Shown: positions 3,001-64,000 of the stretch, piece after piece | Layout of the letters: every line of letters starts with the position of its first letter | Position numbering within the stretch: the stretch's first letter is position 1 | NCBI RefSeq assembly: GCF_026571515.1 | Contig: NW_026860787.1 | Location: 1-64,000 of the forward strand | From: Ruditapes philippinarum | Lineage: Eukaryota | DNA length: 64,000 nucleotides | Direction of reading: 5' to 3' | Program-made: the position numbers and the translations under genes | The notes under the pieces: model-generated | Databases searched by the model: none | Seen by the model: only the letters and a program-made list of their open reading frames with translations | Told to the model about the DNA's origin: nothing

Positions 3001-4091
3001 AAGTTAGCCTGAGAATTTTGCCAACATTGTTACCAGCTACAATATGGTCATATCATTTGCTCAAGCTGATAGATATTATATATACAAATTCCATTTTTTC
3101 CAATGATGAAAACAAACCACCTTATACAGTCACTATACAGAGATAAAAGGAATGCTTTATTATTCTTTTTATAAGCAGCCCCCTTTACCATACCATGGCA
3201 ACAAGTATAGTTGTCAGGTAGTTCCCCTGATATGTATCTGTACAACTGAAGATATGTTATTTTACATATTGCAGATACTTTTATATAAGTCAGTATTCAC
3301 TTTAGATGATCAAAATGAGGAAGACACCTATTTTAATGTGCTATGAGATATATCTTAAGTTCCCATCTATTTAGCTTAGCTGGACATAATAACATGGATT
3401 AAATGGGCTCTGATATGGCAGCAGTTTTATTTCTGTAATTTGGTAAAACAGTGAATTTTCACTAGAATTGTGAATCCCATGCTGAAAATTGTGAAGGACT
3501 GTTGATTATAAATGGGCTTGTTCTTCATTTCCACTTACAATGTATATAAGGATTTTTCTAGTCTCAAAATTGTGAAGGACCATTGTTGATTGTGAATGGA
3601 CCTGTTATTTGGTATCAGTTACCATGATGTAAAAAAAATCACTAATTTTAACATTTTTCATAATCAAAGAACTTAGATGCTTTATATAAACAGTTATAAG
3701 AAACTTTGTTTAAATAAATAAAGTAGAACATATTTATAATTGCTTAATTAGATTATATATCATTGTATTTCATTAGTTTAAATGATATATACACCTGTAT
3801 ATTGATTATTTCACATTTAGACACTCTGACTATTGTAGTAGAAATTTCTTCTTGTAAAGGTGGTCAACCTGATCAGATCAACTTTTAAATGTCTCCAGAC
3901 TTAAGTAACTTTTATGTTTTAAATCTCAGGTGTTGAATGAAACTGCTATTTTGATAATTAATTTTTTTAAAAATTGCATCATCAAAATGAATTTGTAATT
4001 TCCTCCTACATATTACCTCCTTGCACAATCAAGATAAATAACAAACATTTAAAGGGAGACACAGGCAAAATTTTCATTTCTTAGTTTTGAT

Positions 4092-54312: not shown

Positions 54313-54568
54313 CGGTAATAGGACATATTTCACACAAGTAATAGGCGGAAAGTCCGAGCGGGGCCAAAGGCCCCGCGAGGGCTGTAGCGCTCTTAGATAA
54401 CATGCATGTACAAGAAATCCTTAGTTAACTGGGCGCCGCCATTTTGAAATCCTTTTGAGCTAAATATTGATATCACAGCGCTTTTAATGAGCGTCTACAT
54501 AATTCTGACTATTGCTAGCAGACGCATGCTCAAAAACACTTCCAGTGAAAGAATGATTTACAAAATCC

Positions 54569-55640
54569 ATGATTTACAAAGGTCCATGTGGTGCTGGAGC
54601 CTGCATTCTTCTTCCAAACACAGAAGTTATAGAACTGAAACAACCAGTATCAAAATTATCATCAATTTTAGTAGGAGAACTGGTTGCCATTAAAATAACA
54701 CTTCAAGCCCTACTTACTGAGATTGGAAGATTTGAAATAAATAAGATAAAAATACTTAGTGATAGTCAGTCCGCTGTTGGAATTATTGATCTTGGCTGGG
54801 AAAATAAGACACACAAATTCCTGTCAACAGAGATACTCCAGTTGAGGAAAGAGCTTGAATTAGCAGATGTTACTGTCAATTTTGATTGGACTCCTGGTCA
54901 TGCTGGCATAAAAGGGAATGACATTGCTGACGGACTTGCAAAAGAAGCAGCAAAAGAAGCTGAGGAAATGGAAACAGAAGATTCACTCCTTGTAACAAGT
55001 CAAAGTGACATTCGCCACTCAGCTAGAGAATCAGTCCGCATTAAATGGCAGAGAAGATGGGAAATTGTTGAAACTGGCAGGCATCTCTATGGACTCAAGC
55101 CTCAAGTCCAGCCCAAAAAAATTAACTTCCATGGCTTGAGCAACCAAAGACAGTTACTTCAACTACAAAGTGGATATTGCCTCAATGATTATCTGAACAA
55201 GATTGGGGCCAAAAACACAAGTCTATGTAATTGTGGAGAAGTTGAGACAGTAACACATTTTATAGAGGACTGTACCCTGTATGAGGCATCAAGAGAAAAC
55301 CTGAAGAAAGAAATATTCCTAAAGACAGGAATAAGTGTATTTACAAAAGAACTATTGCTTTCAGACATACAAGAAGACCAATTCAAAGACCATAGGCAAG
55401 AGTTGTCAAATATTGCAAATGAATTTGTCAAATTATCCAAAAGATTTTAATTTTTTTTTTTTTCATCCAAAAGATTTTTTTCCCCTTTCAGTTTACATTC
55501 TATTTCATAATCATTATATTGAATTATTGTAACCCTACTTGAGAGTTTTTTACCGTAATCGGAAATACCAGAGTTTAGCTGTACATACCGGAGTGACAAC
55601 ACGGCCATTATCAAGGCTTTGAACGAAACGAAACGAAATC
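54569..55640 (+). mobile_element. 5'-truncated RNase H-bearing LINE (I/Nimb-group-like) in ARPC1 intron 1
   Basis: ORF 54569-55450 with GELVAI, ILSDSQSA, WTPGHAGIKGNDIADGLAKEAA and CNCGEVETVTHFIEDC; 3' tail (gaaac)n at ~55621-55638; lacks the first catalytic Asp motif (truncated). Confidence 0.85.
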
Positions 55641-56262: not shown

Positions 56263-57475
56263 AACACGTTATTTTCAATAATTTCGATAATAATTCGCGG
56301 ACTCTGGTCAGTCTACACGAATTACCGAATTACACAAATACAGGAACCAAAAAACGAACCCGGAAATGAAAATACTCCCGACCTGTAATGCACTTCTGAT
56401 TATTAAATTATTTACTTATTTTTTATTAAGTTAAATTTAGTCACAAAATGTTTATAAAGGTAAGAAACATGACAAAAATTCACGATATATTTTGGAAGAG
56501 GAAATTAAAATTAAAGATATAAAATGTGTGCATCAATAATTTGGTTCCTGACTTTACATTTAAGATCTTGGCGTTTAATGAAACGAGAACCAATCTGTAA
56601 AGGTCAAACTCGTGAACAATCGCAACTTTTCGGCCCTTTCCGTAAGTCCAATATACAGTTGAGCAATCGCAACTACTCGGCCCTTTCCGAGGTGGGGGGA
56701 AAATCCCGGGATCCGGGACGCCCGGGATCCGGGATCGTATTAGATATATAGGGAAAACTCATAAACTATATTTGTGTTTATTTTTGTCGTAATGAGAGGC
56801 GATTAAATGTTAACTATTTATTTCTTTAATTGTATGTAATGAACAGTAAATGAATTTTACTTAAGATTTAAATATATTTCGAGTTATTTATTAACACACT
56901 TAAAATGCGGAAATCACATTACTTGTATAATTACAGTATAGTATACTTGGAAATATCAAAGTTTTTGTTAATACAATATTTGGCTTAATTTTATGTTCAT
57001 GTATTTAAATATTATTTTTAGAAAAGATCAGAAGATATACTTAACATAATTGATAACAAAAAAAAACTTTTGACGTGTATGACAGGTGGTCAATTCCCGG
57101 GATCTCTGTACTGTTTAATAGATCCCGGCTTTTCTGAAAGCAAATTGGTAATGGTCAATTTCCCGGGATATATATATCTTATATACGATCCCGGCTTTTC
57201 TTAATTGGCATGCTTATTTTACCTAAAATGCGTGTAAAATACTATATAAAAATGCAGATAATCGATATATAATTTATCGTCGACACCGAGAACTGGTGGT
57301 CAATTCCCGGGATTACTATATGTTTAATACGATCCCGGATCCCGGCTTTTCTGTAGGCGATCCCGGGATTTTCCCCCCACCCCTTTCGGACAGTCTTCGG
57401 ATAAGGACTTATTAGATAATAGCCGAGGAAGTTCCGAATGATTTTATGCACAACTGGGTTCACCACAACAACAAA
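56263..57475. promoter_or_regulatory. Probable bidirectional promoter between ARPC1 (candidate non-coding exon 1 ending at 56263, - strand) and CNPY
   Basis: Minus-strand GTAAG donor at 56258-56262; the ARPC1 ATG exon has an acceptor 16 nt upstream so a 5'UTR exon is required; CpG-richer sequence, ccggaaat site at ~56360, duplicated caatcgcaact..tcggccctttccg motif at ~56617 and ~56664. Confidence 0.55.
56691..57381. mobile_element. 691-bp Mutator/MULE-type MITE
   Basis: TIR ggtggggggaaaatcccgggatc / gatcccgggattttccccccacc; 9-bp TSD cctttccga (56682) / cctttcgga (57382). Confidence 0.85.
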
Positions 57476-60400
57476 ATGAGGACGAAATCTCTTGTAATTT
57501 TAACTTGTTTATTGAGTTTTGTTGTTTATTGCTGTGCAGAAGAAGAAGATAAAGGACCCGTTATACCACCATCGAAATGCGAAGGTATGACAATTTTTTT
57601 TATTTTTTATTTTCTTGAAAATATGACAAATTATCTTCCTGTTTCAATTTTTCTACTTTCAGTTTAGGTTAGTTTCAACGTTTCAAGTGTGTATTTAATT
57701 AACTAAGTTAAAATATGTTATTACACAATTTCTACCTTATATAAGTGTTGGAATGACATTATTTTCTTATTTGAAACAGGGCCGATATTGGATAATTTGA
57801 ATTAAACATGTGTCAATTATCTAGGGGATTTTTCAATTTTCTATGTGGAATTTTCTGATTGGCTGAAAGCTTATCTATGCTAAACGCCTTTCATATACGA
57901 CGTTGATTGCTTTATACAATGTAACATTATAATGAACGTGCCAGTAGTAACTATTATATCTGATGAATCAGAATATTTAGTTTTAGTGCGGTCAAATAAC
58001 TTATAACAGTTAAATTATATATATATGTCAATGGTCATGTTGAATTATTATGACATGAAGTATTAAGATGTTAGATAACATTTATTTATAAATTGATAAA
58101 TAATCAATATAAATTTTCAAAATTTTCTTGAAAATTAACATGAATTACAGGCAATTGCACATTTTTGAACAAACGAAGGAAATTACATAATCTGTATCAT
58201 TAGAGAAAATATACATTCTGTACCCTGGCACTCAAAATAAGAGATGTATAGCGCAACAGCAAAAAATAATTATGATAAGGATTAAATAAAATGCTAATAC
58301 TAAAAAAAATTTCATTATCAATAAGTTATATTTAATTAATTAACTGCTGATTTACTGGAGGAAATTTTGTTGTTTGCGTTTTTAAATTTTTTATATCCTT
58401 GATATGTTTCTTTTTTTATGAAAAGCTAATAGGTTTAATAACAAAACCTTTTTGACCTGTACCTTATTATCACAGGTCACAAGTTTTTGTTTGAAAACTA
58501 TAGTTACTTAAAGTAAGGCCATCTTTAAAAAAATGTTTGTTTGCAGTAACCCTACCCAGAATTTTTAAGGTGGGTAGGTAGGTCGATTTTTTTTTTTTAT
58601 TGAACTGTACTCCCAAGTAAACATGGAATTTCAAAATGCTGGACAATATATGCTTTGATAATCTGGTAACAATTAATAAATTGATAACTGAATTCTAAAT
58701 TTAATAAGACCTACATTTTATTTCTTCTATTAACCTTTAAAAGAACGAAAACAAAGCACAAGGCATAATTTTCTGATTCAAAAAAAATAATTTTTTATTC
58801 AGACCATGAAAAAAATTTTTGAGTAGGGGCAAATTTTGTGAGTCGGTCGCGTTACTGTAAACAAACATTTTTTTAAGGATGGCCTAATCAAAGTGTTTCA
58901 ATTACTGAACTTTTCAGATTTCTTTATATTTTTTTTTAGCTTGTCTATTTAGAGGTTTAAGTTGAATTTATGATCACACATGTAAATATTGAAATTTAGG
59001 ATAGTAACAGACATGAAAATTTGCCAATACACATGTACCTTAAATATACACCACATATTCATTCATATATATTTGTTTTAGTTTGCAAGTATCTAGCTAC
59101 AGAGCTTAAGGACAGACTTGAAGAAACCGGGAAGACAAAAGAAGTTCTCGAAATTGGACATGGACTTGATTCTAAAAAGAAAAAGAAAATTAAATACAAC
59201 ACAGCGTAAGGATTTAATTTGATAGAAGAGAGTCATGAAATAATATTGTATTATATTTTTTATTTGCTGTAATATATTGTTATTATATTCTAAAAGTGTA
59301 TGTAAAATATGTACTTAAAATTTAATAAAAATTATATGGTAGTAATAAACTGTAGATTCTTAACTTAGAAAAAATGCAATCATTATGAGGGAAATTATGA
59401 TATATTCATTATTCACATTGATACATACTAAGTACTGTGAAAAATTGCTAAGGGAAAAATAATTTAAACATATACATGCACATCCAATTCTTTTGTTTGA
59501 GCTATAGAAAAGCCTACAAAAATATTACAATTTCCAAAGGGATAAACATGGATTATTTGTTGTATTTCAGAGAATTAAGATTGATTGAGGCATTACAAGA
59601 TCCTCATATATGTGATAAAATTCTTCAGTACAATGTCCACAAAGAAAGGGAAGGCAGTTTGAGGTTTGCCAAGGGACAGAGTGAAACTTTCCAAACATTG
59701 CATAATCTTGTGTAAGTAAAAGTGTGTACTAAGAATATTTCTGTAAAAATGTTAGATTTTAAGCACACACATCCAAAATATGTTAATAGATAGAAGGACA
59801 TGCATTATTTTATCAAATATGTAAACAATTAAGAAAAAGGAAATGCTCATGTAAAGCACATGTATTAGTAAGTATTAGTAAGTAGTCAAGTGAATACATC
59901 ATGTTTAACAACTTATCTTGAATGATGAGTTAATGTTTGAGAGATAGAGTTGTTTTAAACATTATGTATAAAGTTGAGGGTTCAAAACATCAGTGAATGA
60001 ACTGTTATAACTTCACCAGGTTTAAAATGACAGTGTTATAATGTTCCCACACAGTCATTACTCAGTGAACTTATAGAAATAAACAAAGTGGTAACTGTGT
60101 TTAAACTTACCTCATTTGTTGGTTTCAATGAAAATAATAAAAGCAGAGAACTTGAAAGTCTATTATACTGCTCAATCTATTAAGTATTTAATGAAAGTTC
60201 TCTATCTACAATGTACTAGTTCTTTTTGTTTATAGTAATAAAGGGGTTGATGTTCAAATGGACATCCCATACGAACTTTGGAACTCTACTCCAGCAGAAG
60301 TTACACAAATGCATAAAGAAGTAAATTTCAGTTGTTAAGTGTTTATTGTGTACCAGTAGAGGTCACTCATTTATCAAAAAGCAGATGTTTATCTTTGGGC

Positions 60401-62916
60401 ATTTGGTCTATTATCATCACCAATTTTTGACTGTTTTGAAGATTGAGTGATACTCACTGTAACTGTTGTGTTTATATATGTTACATTTCAAATATCTCTT
60501 TAAATGTTACCTCTACTGACTTTGTATAGTAACATGATTTTATCTCACCTGAGCACATGGTGCTTAAGGATGAGTTATTAGGATCAGTCACTTGTCAGTC
60601 ACTAGACTATGTCAGAATGTCTTAATCCTTATCTGTGCAGTTTGACCAGGCTCTATACGGTTGGTAGTTACCTATACTGTTGGTAGCTGACCTTGTATTT
60701 TGATATTGAAAAAGCTTAAACATAACATAGACTTTTCCAAATTCTAATTAGGGCAAATTTATTTCACATATTTAGCAAGATAAGGATAAATGATATCCTA
60801 GACAAGTTTTAAACTGTGACATTTAACCAAATACAAGGTCACCATTTCAAATCAAAGAAAAGTTGTAACAACAAACAAAATTAGGTTTCTGATCAAGCCA
60901 TAATAGTGTCTATCTAAATGATTTCTAGTATAAGTTTGAATATGGATTATCTGCAGTGAAAAAAAGCAATGTCATCAGCTCAGATAACAAGAAAACATTG
61001 TAAATACTTATGGTTAGAGTTTTGATTGGACCTTCATCAAATACATCTGTCATTTTGGGGAAGACAGGGTCTTTCAAATAGACAGGCCCTGGTTAAAGAA
61101 CTGGGTCACCAGATGAAATCAACCAAAACCTTGTAACAATTTAAGGTACATTTTTGTACCACTAAATCAGGTAAAATATGAGATGTTTACAGTCTAAAAC
61201 TTGGTTGATGGTATGGAATGAAAAAAGATGAAAGTTTTTAGCTCCACTATTCAAAGAATAGGGAGAGCTATTGTACTCACACAGGCGTCACCATCATAAT
61301 TTTGTTGAGTTCAAGTTGATATCTCCAAAAACACTGCAGGGTATCAGTTGAAACTTTACACACTTATTTAAGAGCATAATAGGCGGTCACTCTCCAAGGC
61401 CCATAACTCTAACATGTATTTTGGCAGAATTATGGCTCTTTTTTGAATGAAGGCAGTTATTCTCCTCTCAGGTGAGCAATGAAAGGACCAGCATAGCCCT
61501 CTTATTTTAATTTTCATTGCATGCTTAATTTTTTTTTCTCTCATTCTTATATCTATTGTCATTATTAGTTTTCACTACATGCACATTATATTAAAAGTAT
61601 TTAAGGACTAATTTATTTCTTCAGCACAACTCATGGTTTTGCATCTGTTACTTTTATTTTCCACAGGTGAACATCGCGTGGCCATGACTTATACTATACC
61701 CCCGTTCCCCCTCTACAACCTTATTTTCCACAGGTGAACGTCGTGTGGCCATGACTTATACTATACCCCCTGTTCCTCCTCTACAACCCAAAACCCTTAA
61801 ACATCATCCAAACATCAGAAGTATTGACAAAAATAAATTTTATGGGAAAAAAAAATTATTTTTGTCAATACTTATGATGTTTGGATGATGTTTAAGGGTT
61901 TTTGGTTGTAGAGGGTGAACGGGGTATAGTGTAAGTCATGGCTACGCGACCTTCACCTGTGTTATTTTCCACATTAGAAAACAAATGATTTAATATATGA
62001 AAGTTTGATTTTTCATTTGAGATCTGGTGAAGAAATTGAAATGGAAGAAATAACTGAAGTAAAAAACTAGTAATTGCAAAAAGGATAAAAAACTTCTAAT
62101 AATTTCAAAATTTAAATAATAATTTAAACAAATTTTTTAAAATTTTTTTCTTTAAATAAGTATGTGAAATATTCTTTTTCTAATGAAGGTACTGTAAAAC
62201 ACATGCTTTCTCAAAGCTCTCATTGTTAGACGGTCAGTTCAGATTATTTTTTTTGTCAATCTTTTGATATTGTGTCTATGTTGTAGTGTACTTGATTGTT
62301 TATAGTAACAAAGGAGTGAAAGTTGTGATGGATGTTCCATATGAACTTTGGAATGCAACATCTGCTGAGGTGGCTCAATTACAGAGAGAAGTAAATGCAG
62401 TATTTTATCTCACCCTCCACACATCCTATATCACTGCTTTGTTTAAGATGACTGGTCATTTTTGCTCATATATGGGGAGGTTTTAATTTTCTTCTCTATG
62501 TCATATCCAAGCATATACCAATATGTCAAAACTAAGGGGAAGGATTGTTTTCATGCCAGTTCCTTTAGTCCAACAGACATAACTTCAACTGACAGTGGTT
62601 TATATGAACTTACATCACTATCAAGCTAAAATAAGTATGTTTAAAATCAAGGCAGTGAAGTCAAGGTTGAACACAGGGGTTGTATACCTAGTACTTACCT
62701 TATTTAGAAGACACATTTATTAATACCCAACTATTTGGTGATGCTGTTTATACCATTAGAACATTAAAACCTCTCCATGTCTATATTATGTTGTACCTGT
62801 GTGTATGTGTTTTGTAAATTCTATATTTAAGGGATAAAGGGGTGAAGGTTGATCTAGGTATTCCCTATGAATTATGGGATACTCCGTCTGCTGAAGTGAC
62901 ACAGCTACAAAGAGAA
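57476..62916 (+). CDS. CNPY3: Protein canopy homolog 3/4 (saposin-like ER co-chaperone), 5' part; 3' exons beyond the window
   Basis: Exons 57476-57584 (signal peptide..PSKCE), 59082-59205 ([18 protein letters not shown]), 59571-59711 ([33 protein letters not shown]), then one of three exon-4 copies. Co-orthologous to CNPY3 and CNPY4. Confidence 0.92.
60236..60320 (+). CDS. CNPY3: Canopy alternative exon 4a ([28 protein letters not shown])
   Basis: tttgtttatag| 85 nt |gtaaat, phase 2-0, open frame. Confidence 0.85.
61729..61961. mobile_element. 233-bp palindromic hAT-type MITE (8-bp TSD ttattttc) with a partial tandem copy of its left end at 61654-61720
   Basis: cacaggtgaa...ttcacctgtg, ~110-bp near-perfect arms, TSD at 61721-61728 and 61962-61969. 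Confidence 0.8.
62306..62390 (+). CDS. CNPY3: Canopy alternative exon 4b ([28 protein letters not shown])
   Basis: gattgtttatag| 85 nt |gtaaat, phase 2-0, open frame. Confidence 0.88.
62832..62916 (+). CDS. CNPY4: Canopy alternative exon 4c ([28 protein letters not shown])
   Basis: ctatatttaag| 85 nt |gtaagg, phase 2-0, open frame. Confidence 0.88.
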
Positions 62917-64000
62917 GTAAGGCATTTAAGGTGATTCCTTAGTCATAGATTAGTTATTTTATCTTGTAATTGATTTCTTTATCTATATTTAAAGCTCAAA
63001 AGTCATATTTTTTCCTTTTGTTTAAAAAGCAAGCAGATGGTAAGCTGTTATTTTTGTTCATCTGAGTCGGATGTATTTATTTTGTACCAGTAAGTTAATT
63101 TCTTGAGAATTGTTCTTTTATCTCTCTGTCTGCTAAACCTCAAATAATGTTAAGTCTCATTTGAAAATATGGAAAGCTATCATTGTCATCTAGGTGTTTG
63201 GGTCTTCACTTTCATGTCACACTTTGGTTAAGTTTTTTGTCACTGTCTTTTCCTTTAAGTGGTATAAAAATTGCCTTGAAACTGGGAACATTTTTTGCAA
63301 CTATTGTCCTGACTTGCAGGCAAAAGAATTTTATCATTTTTTGTCATGGGCTTTGATAAAATTATGTCCATTTTTCACTTACAAACACTTTTTGAACATT
63401 TTTCCATACAGATTTCATAATTTCGAACTCAGAGACCTAAAAATTTGATACATTACAGCTAGGTTCTTCTCCTTACTAACAAACTAGTTTGTTTATTTCT
63501 GATTGTATTGACACTTATTTCTGAGGCTCCACAATTAGGGTATCAAAATTACCTAAATTGTCTACACTACAGTACCATGTGTCCGGACAGTTATGTACAT
63601 GGCGTGATTTAATTCAGATAACTTGTGTGTTTTCATTTTTGAATTTTAACATGGTATACAATATTTCAGCAACAAATGCTGAACTTTTGGAAATTCTATT
63701 GTTTACTCTGCAAATGATTGAAGCTGGTATATGAGGTCAGGCATTGCTTTCTTGACGCCCAAACGTCAACATTGAAATACTTATTAAAATATTACCATTT
63801 ACGGAGGTTGAAATAAATTCATTTACTAAATTATAGAATAAACATGCATTTATTGTTGATAAAAAAGTGACTGACAACCACTGAACAAAGAACATAGTAA
63901 ATTAAGCATTTTCGGGGCCGTCCGAGTTTGGTGGTTGTCCGGTTTTGGTGGTCCCCAACCAGTAGCATTAATATTTTTGTTTTCATTCTACCTGTTTTTT

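Follow-up and report, generated by a model that had tools for sequence, protein, structure and literature searches.

How is a gene read that carries one of its exons three times over inside a single intron, and can one mRNA contain more than one of the copies? This question is raised by a locus of the Manila clam Ruditapes philippinarum, in which three homologous versions of exon 4 (4a, 4b and 4c) follow one another in a gene of the Canopy family. The window, i.e. the whole stretch of 64,000 nucleotides that was analysed, comprises bases 1-64000 of a 235,682-base long-read contig (NW_026860787.1) of assembly GCF_026571515.1 (1.41 Gb, 15,874 contigs). With a probability of about three in four, the locus is read here as a set of mutually exclusive exons that arose by tandem duplication in the single Canopy gene of the CNPY3/4 type in R. 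philippinarum.

Three copies of exon 4 and the reading frame

Exons 4a (60236..60320), 4b (62306..62390) and 4c (62832..62916) are located in tandem on the forward strand, inside one intron. Each is exactly 85 nucleotides (nt) long, with AG directly before it and GT directly after it. Of the three frames of each copy, just the one starting at the second base is free of stop codons; the exon is entered in phase 2 and left in phase 0. All three encoded peptides fit the pattern KGVxVxxxxPYELWxxxxAEVxQxxxE. These features had been described in an earlier note on this DNA and were confirmed by a sequence check at all three positions. Between the copies, the nucleotide identity is 65-71% and 16-19 of the 28 amino acid residues are identical. 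The introns that separate them measure 1985 nt (4a-4b) and 441 nt (4b-4c). All splice sites are GT-AG with U2-like donors, and the best polypyrimidine tract of the three is that of 4a. Outside the exons only about 8-10 nt per side can still be aligned, in agreement with the previous description of the flanking introns as largely unalignable. The suggestion that further copies might lie past the end of the window was not borne out, because a sensitive tblastn search of contig bases 1-84000 (the window and 20 kb downstream) gave exactly three copies; exon 5 follows at contig position 64974.

Exon 3 ends with two bases of a Val codon and hence provides a phase-2 donor common to all three variants. 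When the exons were joined in a local script, any single copy gave a protein of 239 amino acids (aa). Without any copy a stop was encountered in exon 5, and with any pair or with all three a stop was encountered in the second copy. The claim that inclusion of zero, two or three copies shifts the frame, and that single inclusion alone keeps it, is thereby upheld by computation. The resulting stops fall 204-387 nt upstream of the last exon junction, and mRNAs with such premature stops are expected to undergo nonsense-mediated decay. In the proposed mechanism, exon 3 would join 4a, 4b or 4c, and the chosen copy would then join exon 5. Each choice would give a 239-aa protein of the endoplasmic reticulum (ER) that carries a signal peptide and six cysteines and ends in HTEL. 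Transcripts with zero, two or three copies would encode a truncated protein, as computed from the frame, and would presumably be removed by the decay pathway. A database protein of a related lophotrochozoan (P0003, 240 aa) passes from the exon-3 peptide straight into a frame-shifted exon 5, as expected for a gene model or transcript without exon 4.

Two familiar mechanisms of exclusivity are unlikely at this locus: steric hindrance, because of the 1985 and 441 nt between the copies, and U2/U12 incompatibility, because every site is GT-AG with a U2-like donor. A search of the locus introns for docking/selector RNA pairing yielded no convincing system. The only long complementary pair consists of 44 nt with 84% complementarity (positions 3208-3251 with 4645-4688 of L006, the segment of contig bases 59400-65300). 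It was not counted as evidence because one arm belongs to a family of dispersed repeats with at least 15 copies. The Dscam and 14-3-3-xi clusters likewise hold several variants between two constitutive exons, of which one is used per mRNA; in them a docking site pairs with selector sequences in the introns, for which no convincing counterpart was seen at the clam locus.

The divergence of the copies is concentrated at silent positions. Per pair, 13-18 differences are located at third codon positions versus 2 at second positions; the earlier note had likewise observed that many third positions differ. The proportion of synonymous sites that differ (pS) is 0.70-0.91 and hence saturated, versus a nonsynonymous proportion (pN) of 0.17-0.24, so that the ratio of nonsynonymous to synonymous rates (dN/dS) is about 0.1 or less. 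In simulations with random substitutions at the observed divergence, the frame, the five family-invariant residues and the amino acid identity were all kept in 1-4 of 100,000 trials (p ~1e-5). For the pair 4a-4b, with saturated synonymous sites and a pN of 0.17, p under random drift is ~2e-5. The simulation and the saturated synonymous sites indicate that the copies diverged long ago while coding. The three exons are thus supported, on their sequences, as old duplicates under purifying selection, as had been proposed; these figures are between-copy values, from which the constraint on the branch of 4a itself is not separable. In the tree of exon-4 peptides, the end branches of 4a, 4b and 4c have lengths of 0.72, 0.09 and 0.04, respectively. 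Exon 4a keeps the five family-invariant residues but alters two nearly invariant ones (K to D, S to P). The 4b peptide is 89% identical to the 4b exon of Dreissena, which points to continued constraint on the Ruditapes lineage, and the 4c peptide recurs unchanged in Mya and Mactra.

Family assignment and types of exon 4

The gene corresponds to XP_060551951.1, annotated as 'protein canopy 4-like [Ruditapes philippinarum]', which contains the peptides of exons 1-3, 4c and 5-7; the RefSeq model thus represents the 4c form only. Exon 1 (57476..57584, forward strand) encodes the start codon, the signal peptide and the first Cys of a CxxC motif. Exon 2 (59082..59205, forward strand), bounded by AG and GT, matches positions 5-46 of the Pfam domain DUF3456 (PF11938) with an E value of 1e-7, and exon 3 (59571..59711, forward strand) matches positions 49-84. 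A weak match of exon 4c covers positions 86-111, and exon 5 (contig 64974-65091) covers positions 114-146. Exon 6 is located at contig 66329-66430 and exon 7 begins at contig 67496. The domain matches are colinear over exons 2, 3, 4c and 5, of which exons 2, 3 and 5 each pass the cut-off alone, and a genome-wide DUF3456 scan agrees with this exon-level assignment. Joined with 4c, exons 1-7 give the last 239 residues of XP_060551951.1. The exons were joined solely in the local script, for the frames and for this comparison with RefSeq; database searches were run exon by exon or with database proteins. The RefSeq protein begins at an ATG 10 codons upstream (57446-57475), although Met 57476, immediately before the signal peptide, looks like the more natural start.

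Among 60 homologues, the residues C45, C48, C102, C164, C192 and C204 are invariant or nearly so and form a saposin-like pattern. The N-terminus of the protein is hydrophobic and its C-terminus carries the ER-retention tetrapeptide HTEL. All of the best named database matches are 'canopy 3' or 'canopy 4' proteins, which places the gene with CNPY3/4 and not with CNPY1/2. Its assignment as a Canopy (DUF3456) gene of the CNPY3/4 type is supported by these sequence comparisons, and a genome-wide search identified this locus as the single one of its type in R. philippinarum. With the vertebrate proteins CNPY3 (PRAT4A) and CNPY4 (PRAT4B), which are ER-luminal and saposin-like, the clam protein shares the family, the domain order, the six cysteines and a KDEL-like tail. 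In contrast to the two vertebrate genes, the clam has one gene with alternative exons. A second Canopy gene of the clam (contig C5129:220440-222235) has a middle exon that spans profile positions 42-112 without the intron seen in the CNPY3/4 gene. A further single weak DUF3456 match with an internal stop is located at C6101:24882-25019.

An alignment of 49 exon-4 peptides from molluscs, annelids, a brachiopod, nemerteans, arthropods, a rotifer, a nematomorph, amphioxus, Ciona and vertebrates separated two types, N and D, with 100/99 support in the tree. CNPY3 grouped with 4a, 4b and the nemertean exons; CNPY4 grouped with 4c and the remaining invertebrates. D-type exons follow the pattern V-E/D-L-G-I-P ... 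W-D-x-P-S ... V-T. This type comprises 4c (V-D-L-G, D-T-P-S), vertebrate CNPY4 and every invertebrate sequence except in heterodont bivalves and nemerteans, including the listed members of an oyster cluster (67 members) and the clusters of Mytilus and amphioxus. N-type exons follow the pattern x-M-D-I/V-P ... W-N-x-T. To this type belong 4a (V-D-V-Q-M-D, N-S-T-P), a candidate exon and the fastest-evolving copy, 4b (V-V-M-D and an N-A-T sequon), the alternative isoforms of Dreissena and Mercenaria together with a Mercenaria paralogue, and vertebrate CNPY3. The nemertean Lineus longissimus (XP_064643921.1) and a Logan transcript contig that groups with the nemerteans (P0195, carrying one N-type copy) complete this type. 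A region-limited search of proteins with P0195 gave two candidates, of which the one from Lineus was informative. Outside vertebrates, the N type was found in the protein databases only in heterodont bivalves and nemerteans. An N-x-S/T sequon is present in 12 of 12 N-type rows versus 0 of 37 D-type rows. The sole annotated Lineus exon shares the V-D-V-x-M-D form of 4a, which suggests that a 4a-like form is functional elsewhere.

Indirect evidence that the copies are alternatives, stronger than the RNA reads of the clam itself, comes from isoforms of two other bivalves. Dreissena polymorpha has isoforms X1 (XP_052262121.1) and X2 (XP_052262122.1), both of 236 aa, that differ only at residues 125-149. 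Isoforms X1 and X2 of Mercenaria mercenaria, both of 243 aa, differ only at residues 134-155. In both species the differing segment falls inside exon 4, and each pair consists of one 4b-type form (X1 in Dreissena, X2 in Mercenaria), to whose exon 4b of Ruditapes is orthologous, and one 4c-type form. NCBI even names the isoforms by this segment, as 'canopy homolog 3-like' for the 4b type and 'canopy 4-like' for the 4c type. The two pairs indicate that the 4b/4c pair is conserved in heterodont bivalves and, judged from these sequences, goes back at least to the divergence of venerid clams and Dreissena. Another CNPY3/4-type gene of Mercenaria (XP_045214894.2, P0262) lies on the chromosome of the first, is 91% identical to isoform X2 and is annotated with an N-type exon alone. 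This gene may represent a paralogue that has recently become fixed on one variant; the Ruditapes genome has no counterpart of this second locus.

Tandem, mutually exclusive homologous exons are well known; those of human genes have been reviewed (PMC9741552), and the fate of such exons after gene duplication is treated in PMC4494069. The clam copies resemble such cases in their equal length and phase, their own splice sites, their age and the purifying selection on them, in a length not divisible by 3, which puts skipping and double inclusion out of frame, and in isoforms that differ only in the homologous segment. They differ in that three copies reside in a Canopy gene, in that the variants mirror two vertebrate paralogues, and in that the use of clam-type exons is documented by RefSeq models in relatives only. 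No mention of alternative Canopy exons was found in the searchable literature, including the Manila clam genome paper (PMC9803972) and its supplements. The presence of such exons in a Canopy gene is thus without a published description that we could find. The earlier statement that the cassette had not been described holds for that literature, although the 4b/4c alternative is implicit in the RefSeq models of Dreissena and Mercenaria. The resemblance of the variants to two vertebrate paralogues, along with the third copy 4a, adds to the interest of the locus.

The exchangeable segment and its possible origin

GRP94/gp96 needs Canopy 3 to fold most Toll-like receptors. An AlphaFold2 model of the clam protein (mean pLDDT 81) places exon 4 in a loop (residues 137-154) and in the start of a helix (residues 155-170) that leads to the fourth cysteine, with a confidence of pLDDT 85-94 over the exon. 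A search of the PDB by sequence gave no match, and no structure of Canopy 3 or 4 is deposited there; the closest fold is a weak match to human pERp1 (CNPY5). Vertebrate CNPY3 acts as the gp96 co-chaperone for Toll-like receptors, and in mouse CNPY3 the mutation M145K abolishes gp96 binding (Liu et al., PMC2982182). CNPY3 and CNPY4 are reported to be antagonistic with respect to the surface expression of TLR1 (PMC6566547). In the mammalian CNPY3 sequence P0063, which has its native N-terminus, V-V-M-D has its Met at residue 145, and the neighbourhood contains one further Met only, at residue 126. The Met that defines the N type is therefore very probably mouse M145, to judge from this numbering. 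The Met of 4b, and more loosely that of 4a, aligns with it.

Exon 4b shares with CNPY3 the states V-V-M-D, W-N-x-T-S and A-E-V-A; exon 4c shares with CNPY4 the states V-E/D-L-G and W-D-x-P-S. The choice of the exon would switch the protein between a CNPY4-like surface without a sequon (4c) and a CNPY3-like surface with a sequon (4b, loosely 4a), and this switch would affect glycosylation as well as the way in which the protein works with gp96 and the clients of gp96. The reading with the best support is that the choice of the copy exchanges a stretch of the surface that takes part in gp96 binding and carries or lacks the glycosylation site. Individual variants might further serve particular Toll-like receptors, tissues or states of infection. 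The difference between CNPY3 and CNPY4 is poorly understood, and the clam segment is a candidate specificity determinant, since the exchange of 28 residues includes both the sequon and the position aligned with the gp96-binding Met. For bivalve immunity, the locus represents a possible post-transcriptional control point upstream of very large receptor repertoires.

The correspondence of the two exon types with CNPY3 and CNPY4 permits a further reading, in which an N/D exon pair was ancestral to bilaterians and was later separated into the two vertebrate genes. After genome duplication, vertebrates would have resolved the pair into CNPY3 (N type, glycosylated, gp96-binding) and CNPY4 (D type). 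Such a resolution of alternative exons into paralogues, termed splice isoform separation, is known for other genes (PMC4494069). If it were true, a single clam gene would achieve through splicing what vertebrates divide between two partly antagonistic genes, and the clam could be used as a natural system in which to study the role of the one segment by which CNPY3 and CNPY4 are told apart. Common descent is favoured by the approximately six states that the clam N-type exons and CNPY3 share against the D type, and each paralogue keeps the state of one variant, N in CNPY3 and D in CNPY4 (100/99 in the tree). Several observations count against it. The end of the exon tracks lineage and not type, reading L-Q-R-E in both clam variants and L-K-K-Q in both vertebrate genes; recent gene conversion is made unlikely by the synonymous differences between 4b and 4c in this part. 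Among the many invertebrates with a single annotated form, no N-type exon was seen. Lastly, the exons are not the same unit. The vertebrate CNPY3 exon, preceded by an intron after F-A-K, has 123 nt in the mammalian sequence, is in phase 0-0 there and starts 38 nt further upstream, so that the clam exon of 85 nt in phase 2-0 has only the 3' boundary in common with it. The CNPY3 boundaries were read from host DNA in the metagenome contigs L008:451-573, taken as a non-human mammal, and L009:2497-3320, taken as a bird-like host; these were two of three loci that a search of metagenome contigs with N-type sequences gave, the third having no bearing on exon 4.

Convergence is conceivable, because only the sequon requires a coupled pair of changes, while each of the remaining states can be reached by a single-base step. 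The tree cannot tell convergence from descent for exon 4: in approximately unbiased (AU) tests on the 28 columns, a clade of the heterodont variants (p 0.064), a clade of CNPY3 and CNPY4 (0.059) and a clade of lophotrochozoan exons (0.105) were all retained, none being rejected. A bilaterian pair that was later separated into CNPY3 and CNPY4 is regarded as rather unlikely, and for the evolution of splicing the locus is a candidate for either splice isoform separation or a striking convergence. An invertebrate gene of the CNPY3/4 type that is tied to a GRP94 homologue and to Toll-family receptors is Drosophila canopy b (CNPYb), a gp93 co-chaperone as cited in PMC6566547. In contrast to the clam, the insect sequences compared all carry a D-type exon. 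We know of no alternative exon in Drosophila canopy b.

Possible use of the three copies in the clam

None of the sequencing runs recorded as RNA contained the stretch in a look-up. Four raw RNA sequencing (RNA-seq) runs of R. philippinarum from 2026 were mapped on L006, with a sample of 4-12% of each run. Between 95 and 756 reads were placed per run, nearly all of them on repeats, and the gene was barely covered. Bins with reads were those of 4c and, less so, of 4a (the latter in runs X21 and X22). These reads could represent unspliced RNA, because the intron before exon 3 is covered about as well as exon 3 itself in run X22. The earlier note had looked to the mapping of junction reads for a decision among the copies; at the depth reached, with no junction listed, the mapping shows neither use nor non-use.

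Several points weigh against a switch among three copies. The exon depth was 0-4 and fell to zero over the 3' part (second half) of 4b, and none of the exon-exon junctions, to any copy, reached the listing threshold in the four sparse RNA-seq runs. RefSeq lists the 4c isoform alone for R. philippinarum, and the isoform pairs of Dreissena and Mercenaria are automatic Gnomon models. No 4a-type exon was found among the bivalve proteins of the protein databases. With regard to the function, the sequon of 4a directly precedes a Pro, and the identity of M145 rests on the numbering of the one mammalian sequence P0063 and not on the mouse entry. A Pro after the sequon hampers N-glycosylation.

Part of this evidence would also fit a locus in which 4b and 4c are a true mutually exclusive pair, as in Dreissena and Mercenaria, whereas 4a, an additional copy of later origin or in decay, enters the mRNA seldom or not at all. 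This is a real possibility, although one placed well below even odds. Exon 4a has the longest branch (0.72), two nearly invariant positions are altered in it, annotated bivalve proteins contain no counterpart and the read depth in its bin is low. Against a relic stands the intact condition of 4a, with its frame, both splice sites, the best polypyrimidine tract and five invariant residues, along with a saturated synonymous divergence from 4b at a pN of 0.17, hardly attainable by drift (p ~2e-5). The V-D-V-x-M-D form of the sole Lineus exon and the reads in the 4a bin of X21 and X22 also speak against a relic. That only 4c is used in Ruditapes, with 4a and 4b as recently silenced remnants of a cassette working in other bivalves, is improbable. 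The sole annotated isoform is indeed 4c and the 3' part of 4b was uncovered in the four RNA runs, but 4a and 4b are intact despite saturated synonymous divergence, 4b is 89% identical in protein to its Dreissena counterpart, and the small sample of each run barely covered the gene.

An assembly artefact, by which collapsed or misjoined haplotypes or paralogues were placed side by side, can practically be set aside. It has no direct support, although haplotigs do occur in bivalve assemblies and a genuine paralogue is found on the same chromosome in Mercenaria. The copies are 29-35% different and are located 441 and 1985 nt apart in a single intron on a long-read contig, all other parts of the gene occur only once in the genome, and the isoform pairs of two other species imply the same arrangement. 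The cluster of mutually exclusive exons thus remains the preferred reading. Of the splice-switchable cassette proposed in the earlier note, the exclusivity imposed by the frame and the alternation seen in the isoform pairs of two bivalves stood; the splicing of all three copies did not receive the same backing, with a RefSeq model of 4c only and sparse reads.

Several repeats are located in and around the gene. A dispersed repeat of ~580 bp (63385..63965, no strand assigned) in the intron between 4c and exon 5 has at least 40 copies in the genome with 88-92% identity and is not part of the mechanism. Most RNA reads on the stretch stem from copies of this repeat, at whose ends they break. The intron between 4a and 4b contains an element that resembles a miniature inverted-repeat transposable element (61654-61961, L006 2255-2562), with a direct duplication of 67 nt and inverted arms of 83 nt that are 88% complementary and 9 nt apart. 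Upstream of exon 5, a tandem repeat with a 34-nt unit (L006:5315-5600, contig 64714-64999) comprises 8.4 units with 80% matches and runs into the acceptor and the first 26 bases of the exon. Its earlier units resemble copies of the junction between the intron and exon 5, in which TTTTCAAT replaces the real TTTCAG. About 2 kb upstream of the gene, an open frame of 297 codons (54557-55447) with the RNase H-like motif H-x-G-I-x-G-N-x-x-A-D is probably a fragment of a retroelement.

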